DNA of 64,000 bases, taken from contig CP075493.1 in assembly GCA_021613535.1 (NCBI GenBank), forward strand, positions 3,968,001 to 4,032,000, given 5' to 3'. The notes under the pieces were generated by a model. It worked only from the letters and a program-made list of their open reading frames with translations, ran no database searches and had not been told where the DNA came from. A program made the position numbers and the translations under genes. Each line of letters starts with the position of its first letter. Position 1 is the first letter of the stretch. Below, piece after piece: positions 4,552 through 42,116 of the stretch. This stretch comes from Adineta vaga. Its lineage: Eukaryota; Animalia; Rotifera.

Positions 4552-4971
4552 TTATGTTCGTATTACATCGATGTTAACATTATTAGTTAATGGTGTATGA
4601 GTATCATTGATATATACTAACTGGCCATTTCGTTTGGTAATCCTTGCTTGCATTGTAAGACCACCATGTCCGTGTCCAGCTCGTGATTTATCATAATAGA
4701 ATTGAAATCGAATAGGAAATTGTTGACGAGGTTGTAATACTATTTTCTGTCCTCCTAATACAACACTTGGTGCATCCATCAACGAAGCATTCACAACGGA
4801 AACTTCTAATATTTCATCGCCATAAAATACATCTGAAGAATTTCTCGATGATACTACCTTACCAGTTACTGTTTCCCATTGAGAATTATTATTAGTTGTA
4901 TTTGTTTGATAACCATAACCCATCGTTGGATAATATGATCCATAGGGATATCCACGGTATCCTTGAAACAT
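4552..4971 (-). CDS. YbaY/YscW-family (bacterial lipoprotein/pilotin-like) domain protein with Y/G/P-rich N-terminus
   Basis: VTGKV...LEVSVVNASLMDAPSVVLG...QFPIRFQFYYD...QARIT...GQLVYINDT matches the YbaY pattern. First in-frame ATG is at 4971. Intronless. Confidence 0.75.
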   Translation of the reverse strand: MFQGYRGYPYGSYYPTMGYGYQTNTTNNNSQWETVTGKVVSSRNSSDVFYGDEILEVSVVNASLMDAPSVVLGGQKIVLQPRQQFPIRFQFYYDKSRAGHGHGGLTMQARITKRNGQLVYINDTHTPLTNNVNIDVIRT

Positions 4972-5721
4972 TTGTGTAACTTTTAAAATGATTGATAATG
5001 AATAAAAAGTAAAAAACGTTATATATTTTGCAAGAATACGAAATGAAAACAAAACTCAACGAACTGTAACCAAATTAATAACTTTGTAGGAAGTATATTA
5101 TGAAAGAAAAATATGACTCATATTTTAATATGTAAAAATGTTTCTACTAATCGATCCATTATCTTCACAGTTGGTTGTGATTGAAAAGAAAAGAATCATA
5201 CATTCTATCCGAGAGAATTCTCTACAATTGATTTGATCTATATTTATGTGACTTCAATACGCATGATTTATCTTTCGGATTTACACTATTCTAATTTTTA
5301 AATAACAAAGTGATTCTCCAATGTAGCATGTATAAAAATCATGTCATCTTCCGTTATTTTGATTCTATCCTTCTAATACAATCGAGTAATAACATTTATG
5401 TAATTAAAAATTCCTAATTTATCACGATATTCTACGTTAATGACTTTTTTTTCAACTCTTTTCAATTTTCAGGTGATACTCTCACCTTGTTAGATTCGTG
5501 TTCATCAACCTCTGATAGTCTATAATGCTTACTGATCATCAAGATATGTTCCAGCTTTTGTTATCGCTTGGATTATTGATGATTCTTCTTCTTATTATTG
5601 TACATGTATGATGCATGAAAATGGAAACAGAAAATTTCTCTAATCATAGGTCATCTTTATTTGAATATGTTATCAATAACAAAAATAACACAAAAAAATC
5701 TATTTTTCTAATTGAACAAAT

Positions 5722-9302: not shown

Positions 9303-11722
9303 AGTTATTGTCTAGAAAACAGAAATACTGGTTGTGAATATATCTATGGTTAGGAAAGAAATTGTGCCGAAAGAGAGATGAGAAAAAATGGCGTCACTAT
9401 GTCTAACAATCTATCAATACGCTTAGAAAAGAATCGTTTGTTGTGTCTTTCAGGGTCTTTTTTTCTTCCGCTTCTTCTTGCGTTGTTCGATGCGAACACA
9501 AATTCTCACTATTACCACAGAGTTTAATGTGTATGCCTATATTATTATACATAGGCGCCGAGTCTTTTTTCCTTCTTTTTTTTTCCTTGGGTACTAATGC
9601 CTTGTGTTTGTGTGTGTGCATGTAGAGTGAAGAAAGGAAAAAGGAAGAAAAAAAAGCAAGAGAACAGTCAAGCACCAACTCGTCTGAATAAGAATCATGC
9701 GATTTTTCTTCTCTCGCTCTTTTACACAGAAGTTTGCTTAGTATGAGTAAACCACTATTATTATTGTTGTGCTTGATGCTTATGTGCGGTGATTTATAGA
9801 TGCATAGAGAAGGCGACTACTACTGCTCAATCCAAATATACATATTCTTGTCTACTTGAGGGTGGGTATGTCAAAGAATAACAGCAAAAAGAGAAGCGAA
9901 GTATTTGTTTATCAATCAGAAATATACAATCAATGATGCTAAAGAGAAAGAAAAAGACAGAAATCAGATACCTCTGCATGACATTAAAGGTGACAAGTGT
10001 CAATTACATGTGAAGTAATGATATAAGACAAATCTTTGGTAAGAAGTTCTTCCGTCTGAACAAGATAAATATACTATAAGATTATTCGTTTGAGGTATGG
10101 TATGATTTAATATTCATTTCTTTCTATTTGTCCTTTAAATCAATCAGAATCGAAGGTTAGAATTGCTGATGCAAAAATAATTATCGAAATATTAAATCTT
10201 ATACGACAAGTACAAAGTATGAACTTCTTCTTATTCGCAATAAAATCGATCATACAAAAAAAGAAACTATATGAACTTCACAATTGAATAAACATTACGA
10301 AGAATCGATATGAAAAAAATTACTTACTGTTTTCTATTGAGATTTGAAACTATCTATATCTATCTAATATTATTTTTTGTTTTAATGAAAGAATGCATTG
10401 AACCTGATCTAATATTTTCTATAGGTGAGAAACAAATGTTGTCATTTGAACAATTACGTCTACACATCAAAGGTTCAAATGAAAACGTAACATCTGTTAG
10501 AAAGTAATTATGTACATGCATTAGTCTCTCTCGCTCTTTTCCAAGCTGATGTTACAATGGATATGAAAAGAGAAAAGAAACTTTTCTTAATTGATATTCA
10601 ATGAACTTCGTGAGTAGATCTTCCAAACAACTTGTGAATGTGACAGCCAGTAATACTTTTTCTTGTCTCTTCTCTTATGTCAAGTAAACAGAATAACTTC
10701 AACCAATCTCGATCTGTTCATCATAGAGGTTCTTCTGAACACATTTCATTGGTAATTCGACGTTCATTCACTCGTTTCTTCCTGTCTCTCAACTCAAACA
10801 TTGCTTTGCTTTGGTTTGCTTGATGGAATAGTCTGTTCTGCCATTTCCTTACCTTCAATCTTTTCTTTTTGTCTATACACGAACAAATTTTCAAGTAAGG
10901 TCGTCGAAAATCAAAACACAAAAACTCATGTAAAAAAAAGAACGAGAAGAAAAGGTAATAGAAAACAAAGATCATCTTGAAATATGTGGTTACAACTATC
11001 AAATATGTTATTACATACTATATACCATATCAATATGAATATACGTAATATATCAAAAAAAGAAAACTTTCGACTAGATATATAATTGAGCATGAAAATT
11101 GTTTTGATAATGATCTATAATGATATTCAATTATTATAAAAGTTTATATGATGGTTAGTTATATCATTCTTGAAAATGATATATTTGAATGATTGACAAG
11201 TGTTTAATGAATGTTCAAACTAGTCTTTCATGTCATTTAATAGGATTAGTTAGAAAGAATATTAGCAGATTATTGTACGATTTAAATTACTTTAAGAAAT
11301 CAAAGTTTTTTGTAATTATAAATCTACAGATTGATCAATATTTCTTTTTTTTTGTTTGTTCTAAAACCTACATTTGAAGGTGAAAGAAGACTTTTTATAG
11401 TATATGTCATCAGACAGTAAACAAGTCTTTTCTTTTTTTATTATTCATCATCGTTTATTATATTTTTTCATTAACATATTACAAAAAAAAAGCTCTTTTT
11501 TTTCTCTATGATTCTGTCTCATGGATGTTATTTATTCTTTTCCATATACAAGACATTGTACATAAAAATAAGAAGAGAGACAAAAAGAAAACGAAGTAGA
11601 AGAAGAAAACTAGAATTGAGAGATTCGAATGATGGTAAAATAGAATAATAATAAAAAAAAACTTTTCATAGTCGATGATGATGATGATAGTAAAAAATTG
11701 TGTCTTTAGTTTAATCGCTGAT

Positions 11723-13548
<1,826 letters not shown>

Positions 13549-23797: not shown

Positions 23798-26088
23798 TTA
23801 TTCCATGGTACTTAATGGGCCAATGAGTTCTAAGTTCAAATCGGCACCTTCCTGTATCACATCAACGTGTTCAGTATCATTTGGTACTTGGCCAAGATGA
23901 GACGTTGGTACGATGGCTAGGAAGGAAAAGAAAAGAAAGGAGATCAAAACTGTCTTCAACAACAGATTAGAAGACATATCTTTACTTGGACGTTCAGCGA
24001 GGAAAGTTAATTGAAACTCGTATGATCATGGTATCGTCTTGTATATACGAGTTCCAAGACTGTTCGAGTTGTTCCAAGCAAACAAATTGTTTGATGCCGT
24101 ACGACTCATTCATTGTAGTACGCGGGCTAGGGCGTTGAAAACAGTTCGACATTAAGTCGGACCAAATTTGCCGAACATTATGGAATCGATTAACATTCGA
24201 TGTGCTCTGATCTTGTATTGCAAATATTATTTTACAAGAACATGGCCACTGTAATATGCTATCATTTTCACCATGCATTAATACAAGAAATAACGAGATA
24301 TGGGTTCCTCTTGTATCACCATCACCGTACAGATACAATCGCAGGCACATTTTATAGCCATTTAATGTATAGAAGGGTAGTGAGTAGATCGATTTTTGTC
24401 TCTCAGATCGAGCGTCATCTAGTAGGATAAAGATTATTATTATTTAGCACTTCCAAAAAATGATTACTTAATGTATCAAGAGTGAAAATTTGAAAATTCA
24501 TTATTATTTACTTATTACATCTCATAAACTCAGAGGGTGTTTAGAAAATAATTCTATCTGTATAGAACAATTTGAAAAATGCTGTGCTAGCTTGTTAAAA
24601 GAAAAATCAGGTCGCAAATCAGTGTAGATTGAATTTGATTTTATGTTTCTTTAAAATGATATTCTTTCACATATGGCATACATATACGAGCAGATTAGTT
24701 TCTTAACTTCGAAAACTTAAAAAGGCTATTCAAACTCTTTTTATATCTTCAAAATGAAAAGAATGGTTTAAATACGTACTGAACTTTTCCTGGTAACCTG
24801 AAATTTTCCAAATAACTGTTTCGCTTACAGTATCTCTTACATCTGTCGGGAGGTTTTGTTGTAGATTATGATGAATTTGACCTTCGCCTGAGTCTATAGC
24901 ACCATCTTCATGAATGATTACCGCCGTAGAAAAATGAAGATTTAGAGAATCGAATAGGTTTTGACTATTATCAAATACATTCTCAGTGTGACGGTAATGC
25001 TGCTGAGGTTTAATTATTTCTGTACGGCCGAATAATAAGTTTGAATCTCGTTCAACCTACAAAAAGTTGGCATATTATGCAAGTAAGAGATTAAGAGTTA
25101 TCCCGTCGATTCCATACTTACATTTATAGTATCAAGACGAGGTATTTTGTACATATGTTCTCGATCATCATGCTCCTAAAATGCAGAACAACAGAAGCAA
25201 CAATTCGGTAAGAAGTTTTTTATGTCTATACTTGATATAGTTTCAAAGAGCCACTCCAGTCGCATATCTGACAGGTCACTAAAAGCTCATTCATTTCTTT
25301 GAAAAAGCCTTTATCGAACCAAATCTAGAAGTTTAAAGATTGAAATAATCTTAAACTCTCAATATTTTCGTTCATACTTGTTCTATTGCAGATATTTCGC
25401 AACATTGGAAACAATTCATTCCACTAGAAATATTTAAATATAATCACTCACTACAAAATAAAACAACTTACTTATTTTTTATAATAATACAATTCTGACA
25501 TATCCGATGGCCACAGACCAGTTGATAAGGTTTGTGTAAAAATAACTTACAAGATGAGCATATATAACGTAAATAATTTTTTACGGTATCTCGTACATGA
25601 TAATCGTAAGCTAAAGAGTTTGAAGACCGTTTTGCTTCTTGAGGAGGACTCACATGAGCACTCGATCGTTTATTTGAGATTCGCTCTTGATCCATCAACG
25701 CTGTCTCACGTCTTTCGCTTGAATTCGTTGATGTTGTTATATGAACATCCATAACATTTTTAATTTTTCTTGATAGATTTTTTTTAAGAAAAAATCTGAG
25801 CTTTTTTAGTTTGTCTGAAGTGCAACGTTGAGCATGTTTTAAAGCCGCAGAATTATCACAGTAAACGTAGATAACTCGTAGCTGTGAAAATTCATATAAA
25901 GGATCACATATTAATTTTTCAATGACACCTGATGAAACAAACAGATTGATGACGTCTGCATTTGCCAAACTGTTTGTAAGATAACTTAATAATATCGATA
26001 GATCTAGAAATATTTTTATTGGCGGTAGGTCGGACGGTTTTGCAATGGTACCCGACAACAGTAATAAAGTGTCGGCAATGTCAGCCAT
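23798..26088 (-). CDS. TRAF-like protein: pseudo-receiver N-terminus + RING + Zn-finger remnant + MATH; probable 1-nt frameshift near the 3' end
   Basis: RING CSSC..PYQLVCGHRICQNC; exons IWFDKGF..CQICDWSG and VIWKISGYQEKF|NDARSERQKSIYSLPFY..GYKMCLRLYLYGDG..GTHISLF..LQWP (MATH). As assembled it stops at 23994. Removing one base at 24003-24005 extends it through intron 23917-23985 to a stop at 23798. Confidence 0.8.
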
Positions 26089-26576
26089 ACAAAGAATGCT
26101 AGAGAATCACAAATATTATTTAATGAAAGAATCAAAGAGTACTCACTGAAGTTCAATCAATAATTCTTTGTGTGAATGTTGAAACACTAGAATGGTAGAT
26201 ATCAATAATCTAGAAGGAATATAGGGAGTTAACTATTATGAAATCATAAAAAGGTTTATAGTTCGATACATAAATTTATAATCAAATTATTGATAGATAT
26301 AATAAGTAACAATTAAAATGGAAAAAAAATTTAGAAAATGTGCACGGATAACGATTATACATTATTAAACAACAGAAAAATGATTTAATAGGAAAAAATA
26401 TTGTGATAAATTTTACAATATATAAAAAATCACTATTGATATTCTTCTCATCAACGGCAAAACTTAAAATTATAGGGCATTACGAGTTGCAAGTGTTAAT
26501 TCAAATACGTAACTTCCACAGAATCTATGGAACTCGAATAATAATTATACGTTCATATCCATCAAATTCTTGTGTA

Positions 26577-27725: not shown

Positions 27726-28463
27726 CTACAGATGTTTTACCAGAGAACAAAACTTAAGCGCTCGGTCATAGTGTCTTTGGGCTTCAAATTCATTATTACC
27801 GTCTTCTCTTTGTTGATCACCTAATTCTTCCGAAAAAAGTGTCAAATCAATAAATAACTTTACCAGAAGACGCGTATCATCATCAAATATGCCATCCACT
27901 CTTGCATATGATCTTACAAACCGTTGTATAGTCAATATTTCTGTGGATAAACAACGAATCAGAATTGATTGAACACTATCATAATTATGACTACGAGAGA
28001 TAAGTTCCCTACAATTAACAGGCGACTGTAATATAAGAGATGCTATGGTTATCGATGGGTTTAAATCTAGCCATTGCCATAAATAATCTTCGATTGAAAA
28101 GAAAATTAATGTAATATCTATATCTTTCAAATAATGAATCAGTTTAGTCCGTAGAGTTGATTGACATTGACTGAAATAAATTACAATCGGTGCATTTGAA
28201 GAAACTAAAATTCGAAAAAGAACAAATTAATAACCATCATGTACTAAATCGTAGTCGAGCAATAGTTTTTTTCATCTCTGAATCTATTTCCTACCATTGC
28301 CGTAAACAACTTCAAATGGTTCATAACGCTGTTTTACTGGGCAAATAAATCTATCATCGTCATCATTATTATTGATAGTTGTAGCATTGTTCAATAATAC
28401 GGATTCAGATAAAATCCTCGTTGGGTACTCAACAACAGATAATTTATCTACCAAGAGTGACAT
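27726..28463 (-). CDS. Pseudo-receiver-like domain protein with C-terminal TPR-like helix pair, 2 coding exons
   Basis: MSLLVDK...YGN|VSSNAPIVIYF...LKDIDITLIFF joins ORFs 28284-28493 and 27726-28130 in frame. The alpha/beta pattern (VQSILIRC...VDGIFDD..LLVKL) resembles 41688-42116. Confidence 0.6.
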
Positions 28464-29441: not shown

Positions 29442-30815
29442 CTATATTTTCAAACTCTGATCTAATATTTCTTGATCATCTCGTTTCGTATTGACCTTTA
29501 ATTGTTCATCAATGTGTGTAAAGTGTTCTAATGTTCGATGTCGAATGGCATCTTGTATATGGATCGGTAATGCAATATCATCCATCATCGTATATGGTAA
29601 AGGTATCTTCTGTTTACCATCAAAGTTAATGGTAGCATTCAGAAACATCGTGTTATTACGAACATAATTATTTTCTGATCGGTGAATGAATGCTAGTGGA
29701 CAAAATTTCAGTATCCCATAGGCAATATTCATTCCTACACTTGGTTTTTGAATGTCTGTCAATATTGTATCGGGATAGAGAGTATCAACAATATGTTGTT
29801 TTCTACCAGTTTGATCATAGAGACAAAATGTTATTGAAAAATTAAATGGCCATTTCAATAGCACGTCATAATCTCCTTCGAAGAAAACAAGAAATACAGA
29901 TGTATGTGTGCCATAAGCATCACCAACACCATTCATATCCATTGCGTATTCGCATATTGTATCCAACTGGTGACGAATAGAACAATGGAGAATATATTGA
30001 TATTTGTCGTTCCGATCGTGCATCTTCTGAAACGGCAAAGTTACAAGATATTTCTTTAAAGAAATCGATACGTACCATATTTTTCAGCAACATCAGTAAT
30101 TTTCCAAACGAAGGAACCATTTGTGGAAGTACAATGAATATCTTGTATTTTTTGTTCAAGTGTAAGAAAATTTTGTTTTAATGCATCTTGCATCATTAGC
30201 ACCCGTTTAATATCAATATTCGTTTGCGATACTGAACATTTTTCTCTTAAATATTGTAAAGCATCCGTACAATTAATTACTTTATCCTCGAGATGTTGAA
30301 TATCGTTCTTGACGTTTTGTATTTCTTGCATAAGATTGTTAACAGTTTTGGGTTTCGAAAATGAAAGATGTAATTCCATACGCATTGTAAGGAAGGTTTC
30401 AACATCATTCTACAACTCACATAATTCAGATTTTATCCAGTTAAAGAACATTATAAATACCAATTCATTTGAATCGTACGATTCGTCAACATAATTGTCC
30501 CAAAGACCAAACAAATGACCCTTCCAGAGAGGATAGTATATAAGACTGAATAAAAAAAAATGAACTTACTAAGATCATGGACATCCTCTTTTGGCATTCT
30601 ATACATACATGAAAATTCCTCGGAATGAATGATATATAGTTACGATTAAGTTTACATGTTCAATTCTCTTACATTTCATTCTCGACGTCTACCAATAAGT
30701 CGAACAAATTTCGCTCAGTCAAAACAGGAAAATTATCGACATTTATGGTATTACTACTTTCGAATGTTGAGTCAAATGAAAAATATTCACTTGTAGAATA
30801 GGCTTTCTGCTTCAT
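29442..30815 (-). pseudogene. Second TRAF-like gene (coiled coil + MATH, no RING seen), frameshifted in MATH: pseudogene or assembly error
   Basis: NGSFVWKITDV..|EDARSERQISIYSPLFYSSPVGYNMRIR, then a +1 shift at ~29942 to MDMNGVGDAYGTHTSVF..LKWPF..FCLYDQ. 5' exons are uncertain. Confidence 0.65.
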
Positions 30816-41351: not shown

Positions 41352-41687
41352 TTGTCTTAGTAAAATATTGCTTGAAAGAACAAATCTAAAATACTTTTTT
41401 TTCGAAAACATAATATTTGTTGAAACATTCATATGAAAGAGTCATTATGACGAAAACATTTTTCTTTCCTTTTTCGCTTCGAATGATAATAAGGGAGAAA
41501 AGAGAATGATTCATACTACAGGGTTTCTTCCGATAAACGCTCTACCCATGGGAAAAAAACAAATGTACCGATTATTGAATCATGTAGAAGTTTCCAATGA
41601 TTACGTAAACTTAAATACTATATTTATTAGAGACAATGAATGATCAGTTCACTATTTTCTGTTTTACTACACTCATATACATTTAAT

Positions 41688-42116
41688 ATGGTTACACATA
41701 CAATTATTTGGGTGGATACCAACGCTTCAGATGTTAGTAGTACTTTTCGTAGTAAACTTGGTGATGCACAATTTTTTACTGAGTCGAACGATTGTATAGA
41801 TTACATTCAATCACATTCAAATATATCTATTTATCTTATCGTATCTGGTCATTTAGCGAAATCTTTGATACCGAAAGTTTACGAATATTCAAATTTGATC
41901 AAAACTTTTATCTTTTGTGGATCAATTATAGCATATGCAGAATGGGCAATGGACTATTGTGATAAATTAATGATATTTGATCATGGTGATGATCTCTTAG
42001 AACGATTATGGAATGATCTAGAAAGTCAGTTTCGTGCACAAGCGATACAATATTTACGATGTGCAGATAAATATAAAAATCGAGCACTTCAATACAAGCA
42101 ACCAGCTTGTGGTTAA
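41688..42116 (+). CDS. Stand-alone pseudo-receiver (CheY-like) domain protein
   Basis: IIWVD...DCIDYI..IYLIVSG..LIPKV..TFIFC..EWA..IFD..DLLERL shows an alternating beta/alpha pattern. Confidence 0.65.
   Translation: MVTHTIIWVDTNASDVSSTFRSKLGDAQFFTESNDCIDYIQSHSNISIYLIVSGHLAKSLIPKVYEYSNLIKTFIFCGSIIAYAEWAMDYCDKLMIFDHGDDLLERLWNDLESQFRAQAIQYLRCADKYKNRALQYKQPACG

Follow-up and report, generated by a model that had tools for sequence, protein, structure and literature searches.

The DNA analysed here is a stretch of 64,000 nucleotides from the rotifer Adineta vaga (contig CP075493.1, the chromosome-scale C1 of our searches, positions 3,968,001 to 4,032,000; hereafter the window, numbered from its first letter), i.e. 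AT-rich eukaryotic DNA with a GC content of about 0.30. We focused on a gene of its minus strand which, by its domains, encodes a RING E3 ligase of the TRAF family and whose RING is preceded by an N-terminal domain (N-domain) predicted to adopt a CheY-like fold. Two other genes of the window carry relatives of this domain and are named by their positions, i.e. the stand-alone 41688 protein and the small 27726-type protein. An earlier note on this DNA, made from the letters and their open reading frames (ORFs), had described the gene as a TRAF with an N-terminal pseudo-receiver.

Read from the sequence, the coding region begins with an ATG at 26088 and comprises six exons on the minus strand (26088-25472, 25423-25378, 25324-25232, 25175-25122, 25056-24780 and 24418-23994). 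The coding part of the first coding exon (25472..26088; joint 25423|25472) holds the N-domain, a linker and the first half of the RING, and in the ORF 25471-26088(-) an N-domain of ~118 aa, a linker of ~58 aa and this RING half follow one another in one open frame. The exon corresponds, with 100% identity, to residues 1-205 of the public protein UJR14221.1 ('hypothetical protein I4U23_001214', Adineta vaga; P0001 in our searches). Upstream of the ATG, a GT..AG intron of the 5' untranslated region (UTR; 26099..26146) is followed, in the 5' direction, by a non-coding exon that starts at or above 26147. Exon 5 (24780..25056; joints 25054|25120 and 24418|24780) encodes a non-coiled linker and the first MATH strand (..TVIWKISGYQEKF), and exon 6 (23994..24418) encodes the TRAF-C/MATH domain, ending in ..SINFPR with a TGA at 23994-23996 in the window haplotype. 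Between them lies intron 5 (24419..24779, 361 nt).

Evidence for transcription came from contigs assembled from three runs of a single study of 2024, labelled 'RNA?' (X1, X2 and X3), which were examined together with contigs of a DNA run (X6). Six GT-AG joints link the N-domain/RING exon to the MATH exons in contigs of X1-X3 and none of the six occurs in those of X6, so X1-X3 contain spliced transcripts; the joint of the 5' UTR, 26098|26147, is present in contigs of all three runs and not in X6. X3 record 21 and X2 record 15 represent exon 1 together with the 5' UTR, X3 record 20 reaches from position 25795 in exon 1 across the small exons into exon 5, and X1 record 2 connects exon 5 to the MATH exon. 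The gene is expressed and spliced. Since the overlapping spliced contigs tile the mRNA, and since the N-domain and the RING share one ORF, the N-terminus lies on the same transcript as the MATH exons, as the earlier note had assumed; separate transcripts, which would have told against its proposal, are not what the contigs show. The public A. vaga model UJR14221.1 (378 aa, ending ..EKFSTYLNHSFHFEDIKRV) reads into intron 5, and the deposited protein therefore lacks the MATH domain. The intron 5 joint is spliced in X1 and X2; contigs unspliced over this intron are also present (records 4, 12 and 19), at a lower depth than the spliced form, and its retention may thus be a real minor isoform. In our searches the exons were used separately and P0001 stood in for exons 1-5.

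The C-terminal part of the protein was readily placed among TRAFs. Its MATH domain matched Pfam TRAF-mep_MATH with E 3.4e-33 (115 bits, cut-off 27.4) and MATH_2 with E 2.3e-33; among PDB sequences, the best matches were TRAF5, TRAF1, TRAF2 and TRAF3 (E 2e-27 to 1e-23), followed by TRAF4 and TRAF6, with meprin far behind. The C3HC4 RING (25399..25560, with the 48-nt intron 25424-25471 inside) reads C177-x2-C180-x11-C192-x-H194-x2-C197-x2-C200-x9-C210-x2-C213 and is complete across the exon 1/2 junction, all eight ligands being present with canonical spacing both in the sequence and in P0001. Its Pfam matches were weak (TRAF3_RING and zf-C3HC4_4, E 6e-4 to 9e-4; for P0001, TRAF3_RING gave 19.9 bits against a cut-off of 26.9) and stayed below cut-off, since the models cover the finger only in part; in the paralogue P0057, the zf-C3HC4 cut-offs are passed. 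One TRAF-type-like zinc finger follows (C-x2-C-x11-H-x4-H, 25155..25273, with intron 25176-25231 inside; joints 25324|25378 and 25174|25231); it was read by eye, and Pfam zf-TRAF gave no match to P0001 at E<=0.01. For the coiled coil we used a crude home-made heptad score, by which the best 28-aa window reached 0.68 and none reached 0.85, compared with 14-36 windows at or above 0.85 in the paralogues P0055, P0060 and P0057. The description of the zinc-finger array and coiled coil as much reduced was therefore accurate, with one finger left and no window scoring as coiled coil. Since TRAF7 and several TRAFs of invertebrates depart from the canonical architecture as well, we still file the gene as TRAF-like despite this; by its domains, i.e. 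a C3HC4 RING, one finger and a TRAF1/2/3/5-like MATH, it is a TRAF-family RING E3 ligase. With at least 41 MATH exons of the TRAF type counted in the A. vaga genome, the gene belongs to a large TRAF expansion.

A second TRAF-like gene lies in the window at 29442-30385 (-), with a heptad-rich coiled coil and a TRAF-type MATH (C1:3997640-3997942, E 8e-20). The frame in which its MATH begins (..DARSERQISIYSPLFYSS..) differs from that of the rest, owing to an intron or a frameshift, and no TRAF-type N-domain was detected upstream of it.

The N-domain itself (residues 1-118, 25735..26088) has no Pfam model. The earlier note had matched it by eye with the 41688 protein, a match that needed profiles because pairwise BLASTP was weak (E 0.004, with weak or insignificant values within the trio of the window). 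A hidden Markov model (HMM) built from 45 A. vaga 41688-type copies, without TRAF sequences, scored the TRAF N-terminus at 29.8 bits. Two non-overlapping alignments were then compared, i.e. 64 TRAF-type sequences only (A1) and 76 general-family sequences only (A2). Over the 565 ORFs of the window, the A2 profile ranked the TRAF N-terminus second (E 8.3e-8) and the 27726 ORF third (E 1.2e-5), the next ORF having E 0.1, and hhalign aligned A1 with A2 over 109 columns (95%, E 3.9e-8). Profile score, ranking and profile-profile alignment thus bear out the homology with the 41688 protein. The domain of the 41640/41688 type is abundant, with more than 400 candidate copies in the A. vaga genome, 150 of which were scored, down to E 1.6e-5. 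In this general family it mostly heads long ORFs with an R-S-E-type ADP-ribosyltransferase (ART) and KLC/NPHP3-like tetratricopeptide repeats (TPRs), and it also occurs alone. The source names of two proteins with a 41688-like or general-family domain point elsewhere, i.e. 'Cytidyltransferase-like domain-containing' for P0133 (A. steineri, 284 aa) and 'hemerythrin-like domain-containing' for P0109 (JGI, 291 aa); this reflects either additional architectures or the merging of gene models.

The stand-alone member of the window (41688..42116, plus strand) is a protein of 142 aa counted from M17 of the ORF 41640-42116, which measures 158 aa from its first ATG. Its orthologues from Rotaria spp. and A. 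steineri measure 141-144 aa (58-70% identity), so M17 at 41688 is probably the true start. The protein is strongly conserved between genera; its paralogues are only 20-30% identical.

An exhaustive protein search with exon 1 of the TRAF gene returned 79 clusters. The combination of N-domain, RING and MATH was found full-length in Rotaria magnacalcarata, R. sordida, Adineta ricciae and A. steineri, i.e. in at least seven full-length proteins of four other named species, and in a transcript contig without introns, of unknown species; members with shorter gene models come from Rotaria sp. Silwood1 and Silwood2. In a joint tree, which was unrooted and in which all general-family sequences came from A. 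vaga, the 64 TRAF-type N-domains all fell on one side of a branch with a Shimodaira-Hasegawa-like approximate likelihood-ratio support (SH-aLRT) of 100. On these sequence grounds, the TRAF N-domain represents a divergent and monophyletic offshoot from a domain family of bdelloids, and the data are consistent with a single fusion between N-domain and TRAF before the Adineta-Rotaria split. The architecture is indeed non-canonical, as had been claimed, and the focal protein is one member of a bdelloid-wide subfamily. Public databases already contain this subfamily, unnamed, as 'MATH domain-containing proteins', and the literature that we searched on bdelloids held no description of the N-terminal domain.

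The boundaries of the gene called for one correction. It had been given as 23798-26088, and the start stands; the end at 23798 is reached only by a haplotype shorter by 1 nt, the coding sequence of the window stopping at 23994-23996. The window has one T more than the X6 DNA contig in the T-run at 24003..24005, the contig lacking one base at 24003 with a depth of 70/70. The 1-nt-shorter form shifts the frame to ..NF(L/F)AERP.., like that of paralogues, whose C-termini read ..(D/N)F(L/I)(S/A)ERP followed by an acidic tail of ~40 aa. Read in frame +1, the window gives ..TFLAERP, then a 69-nt intron, then IVPTSHLGQVPNDTEHVD..STME to 23798. This putative intron (GTAAAG..CCTAG, 23917..23985, after ..AERP) would belong to the 3' UTR in the window frame and to the coding region in the shorter haplotype; between 24004 and 23913, X3 record 17 counts 20 letters against 90 in the genome, which fits a shorter T-run together with removal of the 69-nt intron. 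An insertion in A. steineri P0097 falls exactly at the ERP position, which suggests that the intron site is common to both. The terminal exon (23798..23916, stop 23798-23800) encodes the conserved acidic tail; it was compared with the tails of P0004, P0029, P0034 and P0055, is covered by transcript contigs and is out of frame in the window haplotype. The window haplotype or its assembly thus loses a conserved tail after an intact MATH, the extra T being an assembly error or an allele.

Such irregularities raise the question whether the gene is a gene-model artefact, the N-domain and MATH exons belonging to separate genes, or a decaying gene. The public annotation without MATH, the occasional retention of intron 5, the early stop relative to paralogues and the neighbouring coiled-coil/MATH gene at 29442-30385, which looks frame-disrupted, could all be read in this way. 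We regard it as very improbable: the N-domain and RING share an ORF, the spliced contigs join all exons, the early stop leaves the MATH intact and cuts off only the tail, the frame being open in another haplotype, and the same architecture recurs in the four other named species and the transcript of unknown origin. An artefact of the gene model in particular was rejected on account of the spliced contigs.

The fold of the domain was predicted with AlphaFold2 (AF2) from both alignments, which were folded separately and do not overlap, so the two models are independent. That of the TRAF N-domain reached a predicted local distance difference test (pLDDT) score of 86.6 and a predicted template modelling (pTM) score of 0.79, with elements in the order b1, loop, b2, a2, b3, a3, b4, a4, b5, a5, the loop standing for helix a1 of the general family. 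The model of the 41640 protein (pLDDT 91.6, pTM 0.81) has a full (beta-alpha)5 arrangement and a long C-terminal helix. Against 48,161 representative chains searched with VIA-align, the TRAF N-domain matched receivers with Z 10.0 and a root-mean-square deviation (rmsd) of 2.9 A over 110 aa, and the 41640/41688 model with Z 12.9 and rmsd 2.3 A over 109 of 121 aa; the top-50 lists of both models consisted almost entirely of response-regulator receivers. Foldseek against PDB gave both models only non-significant, generic alpha/beta matches, with the KaiA pseudo-receiver on top for the 41640/41688 model (E 0.028) and several receivers also leading its list. A CheY-like, flavodoxin-like (beta-alpha)5 fold is thus supported by the predicted models. 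PDB entry 28tm_A ('uncharacterized Rossmann fold protein from Homo sapiens', released 2026) equals the receivers in its fit to the 41688 model (Z 11.7 and rmsd 2.5 A over 102 aa; VIA-align row 35).

This likeness does not extend to the sequence. Pfam Response_reg (PF00072) matched none of the 76 general-family members, even at E 1, and the A2 profile found nothing below E 0.24 among all PDB sequences. The catalytic positions of receivers (acidic pair, acceptor Asp, Thr/Ser, Lys), which we mapped by the strand ends of the models and not by residue-level superposition, are occupied in the general family by D, S, C and T/D, i.e. an Asp after b1, a Ser-Gly at the phospho-acceptor Asp, a Cys at the Thr and no Lys after b5; in TRAF-type sequences they are P/S, P/S, Y/C and variable. 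With no sequence signal of a receiver (REC) domain and without its catalytic residues, the term pseudo-receiver used by the earlier note is right at the level of the fold only, where the two predicted models favour it. A genuine two-component receiver, of bacterial origin and still phosphorylated on Asp, would agree with the CheY-like fold, and bdelloids carry many foreign genes (PMC3846280); it is nevertheless close to refuted, as Pfam and PDB sequences gave no match, Ser/Pro and Cys/Tyr stand (by strand ends) at the acceptor Asp and the Thr, the Lys after b5 is missing, and the neighbours in the Atlas are all Rotifera. Judged by its residues, the N-domain is not a phospho-receiver, and a true REC domain was rejected.

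In place of the REC residues, the general family has a signature of its own (41640 numbering: W24, D26, C52, S69-G70, G73, P78, C93 and W102), with D26, C52, S69 and C93 present in 67-71 of 76 sequences. In the models, this conserved Asp/Cys/Ser-Gly/Cys cluster would lie on the face of the receiver active site, as placed by strand ends. It gives some ground for a ligand- or nucleotide-responsive switch, in which the N-domain would bind a small molecule (e.g. an NAD-derived ART product) and gate RING dimerisation or activity: the general family keeps D26, C52, S69-G70-x2-G73 and C93, by strand ends at the phosphate/Mg site of receivers, and the focal protein keeps S52, G54 and C77. Kinase-independent receivers acting as nucleotide switches have been proposed for bacterial conflict systems (PMC8195603). 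Against it, the TRAF-type branch mostly has P, L, P and Y at the positions of D26, C52, S69 and C93 (44-56 of 64 sequences), and the focal protein, which retains only the three residues just named, has neither the signature Asp nor the first Cys; we therefore think such a switch quite unlikely. This replacement of the conserved cluster in the TRAF-type branch points instead to a degenerate, non-ligand-binding version of the family domain.

A third branch of the superfamily is found next to the TRAF gene. The 27726-type small protein (27726..28226, minus strand) combines a divergent form of the domain with a helical tail, and its gene, on the same strand, is the immediate upstream neighbour of the TRAF gene, with its stop ~1.6 kb from the TRAF ATG. 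With hhalign, the profile of the 27726-type subfamily matched the general family (A2) over 123 columns (96%, E 4e-9). Only four close loci of this subfamily exist in A. vaga, and 4/4 lie directly upstream of, and on the same strand as, an N-domain-TRAF gene. Besides the pair of the window, these are C3:15.108-15.111 Mb (L003/L085, at 15.109 Mb; same strand, gap ~190 nt), C1:16400500-16404600 (L097, at 16.401 Mb; same strand, gap ~240 nt) and C4:10102000-10111000 (L098, at 10.105 Mb), where the small ORF is in two pieces or frames. At all three, the small gene stops close to the next ATG, the two gaps given being those that were measured. The TRAF at C1:16.401 Mb has fuller fingers, a coiled coil and a MATH (TRAF-type HMM E 1.7e-23). 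In the upstream TRAF of the C4 locus (L004), a stop lies inside the MATH. Bdelloids use spliced-leader trans-splicing.

The same arrangement was found beside A. ricciae P0043 and, repeatedly, in A. steineri, next to P0055 and to a MATH gene in its neighbourhood. On the A. steineri contigs CAJNON010000863.1 and CAJOAY010000390.1 (L095/L096), tandem MATH/TRAF genes are interleaved with 27726-type ORFs, and at least three such ORFs of the A. steineri array are near-identical (4963-5451, 10215-10703 and 11260-11748); the sequences suggest that the 27726-type gene and the TRAF gene amplify as a unit. Among pair copies, identity is 31-62% for the small proteins and ~28% for the TRAF N-domains: the copies are old and both genes have been retained together, which argues for functional coupling.

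As the best explanation of the whole, to which we assign a probability of roughly 0.6, we propose a TRAF whose CheY-like N-domain acts as a non-catalytic recruiting module for members of its own superfamily. The N-domain would be a protein-protein interaction module without catalytic function, pairing with superfamily domains, first that of the neighbouring 27726-type protein and possibly those of the 41688 protein or of ART-TPR proteins. The ubiquitin machinery of RING and MATH would thereby be brought into a lineage-specific, probably defence-related network, and in members without a coiled coil, the focal one included, the N-domain may partly replace the canonical oligomerisation through the coiled coil. 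A homotypic adaptor of this kind, also advanced by the earlier note, is a plausible proposal and gains indirect support from the conserved pairing of the 27726-type and TRAF genes and from the loss of the conserved polar cluster in the TRAF-type branch. A wider version would make the receiver-fold domain a homotypic adaptor specific to bdelloids, equivalent in function to death-fold or TIR domains though different in fold, which would wire several hundred ART-TPR proteins (as sensor-effectors), the conserved domain-only proteins of the 41688 and 27726 types and a dedicated set of N-domain-TRAF ligases into one network of innate immunity or cell death, with the 27726-type/TRAF pair as a co-inherited regulator-ligase module; this we advance tentatively, as possible rather than probable.

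Several points weigh against the recruiting-module reading. The hhalign match between 27726-type and TRAF-type profiles is weak (21%, E 0.001). The pair is not universal, as no 27726-type gene was found beside two Rotaria N-domain-TRAF genes, and adjacency at paralogous loci could come partly from duplication as a unit and not from selection on linkage. Outside A. vaga, focal exon 1 has no relative above 34% identity, so the focal gene evolves fast and could be drifting. Through Ser52, Gly54 and Cys77, the focal member might still have a residual ligand site. As for the fold, receivers are so numerous in PDB that their share of the VIA-align lists is inflated for any (beta-alpha)5 domain of 120 aa.

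The same putative homotypic contact could serve another end, i.e. that of a dedicated control ligase, in which the N-domain would lead the TRAF E3 to its substrates, i.e. ART-TPR proteins recognised by their N-domains or the small neighbour; potentially toxic ARTs would be restrained by ubiquitination, and no signal would be relayed. Hundreds of ART-TPR proteins are headed by the same domain, and a precedent exists in fish, where an ART-domain protein and TRAF6 antagonise each other, TRAF6 ubiquitinating the ART protein and the latter modifying TRAF6 (PMC12957317). However, the fish ART is diphtheria-toxin-like, belongs to another clade, carries another N-terminal domain and faces a canonical TRAF6, so that it offers an analogy only (the paper concerned, PMC12957317, is on Crinkler/AACRNL and an N-terminal ubiquitin-like domain); a control ligase also rests on the very contact that the recruiting module requires, and we consider it unlikely. 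TRADD-N binds the TRAF MATH domain, and this was the origin of another lead for the N-domain. A relationship with TRADD-N was rejected, as the fold of TRADD-N is RRM/ACT-like (PMC8195603) and Pfam gave no match.

Compared with canonical TRAFs (TRAF1/2/3/5, TRAF6), the focal protein has in common the C3HC4 RING, a TRAF-type-like finger and the C-terminal TRAF-C/MATH; it differs by the ~118-aa domain of predicted CheY-like fold and the ~58-aa linker before the RING, by its single finger (TRAF2 has five, TRAF6 four) and by the lack of a detectable coiled coil, and its subfamily adds an acidic tail after the MATH. With REC domains, and with pseudo-receivers like the N-terminal domain of KaiA, the predicted models share the (beta-alpha)5 arrangement (Z 10-13, rmsd 2.3-3 A, ~105-115 residues), and the rotifer domain, like pseudo-receivers, is without the phospho-acceptor. 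It departs from REC in showing no REC sequence similarity and no catalytic D/D/D/T/K, in occurring in an animal, in the D..C..SG..G..C..W signature of its family and, for the TRAF-fused form, in the missing helix a1. Adaptors of the death-fold and TIR families offer an analogy of organisation, i.e. a small domain that is common to many sensor- or effector-type proteins, a ubiquitin adaptor and stand-alone proteins; the death fold is unrelated, and TIR is alike only in being flavodoxin-like, TIRs being absent from the VIA-align lists. CARD-only and PYD-only proteins are encoded beside their targets, and the rotifer domain-only gene that adjoins a multidomain gene may be likened to these regulators. 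In the rotifer N-domain + ART + TPR proteins (annotated 'NAD(P)(+)--arginine ADP-ribosyltransferase'/TPR), the N-terminal domain is homologous; unlike the TRAF form, they have an R-S-E-type ART and KLC/NPHP3-like TPRs instead of RING and MATH, and they keep the polar cluster.

TRAFs are central ubiquitin adaptors of animal innate immunity, and the mode of their recruitment defines the pathway. To our knowledge, this fold has not been known as an adaptor in animals. Bdelloids are noted for asexuality, desiccation tolerance and foreign genes, and their immune system is almost unknown. What is new here is a TRAF with an N-terminal module from an undescribed domain superfamily, the proteins themselves being already public and unnamed. 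In its proposed role, this TRAF subfamily would possess a second recruiting module, drawn from one of the largest gene-family expansions of bdelloids, and the pair of small-protein and TRAF genes makes a concrete two-protein system. Should the adaptor reading fail, the public model UJR14221.1 would still be corrected and a new domain family with three branches defined. If it is true that the domain is a homotypic adaptor, bdelloids would have invented independently the logic of death domains and TIRs, and the expansion of ART-TPR proteins would gain a signalling context.

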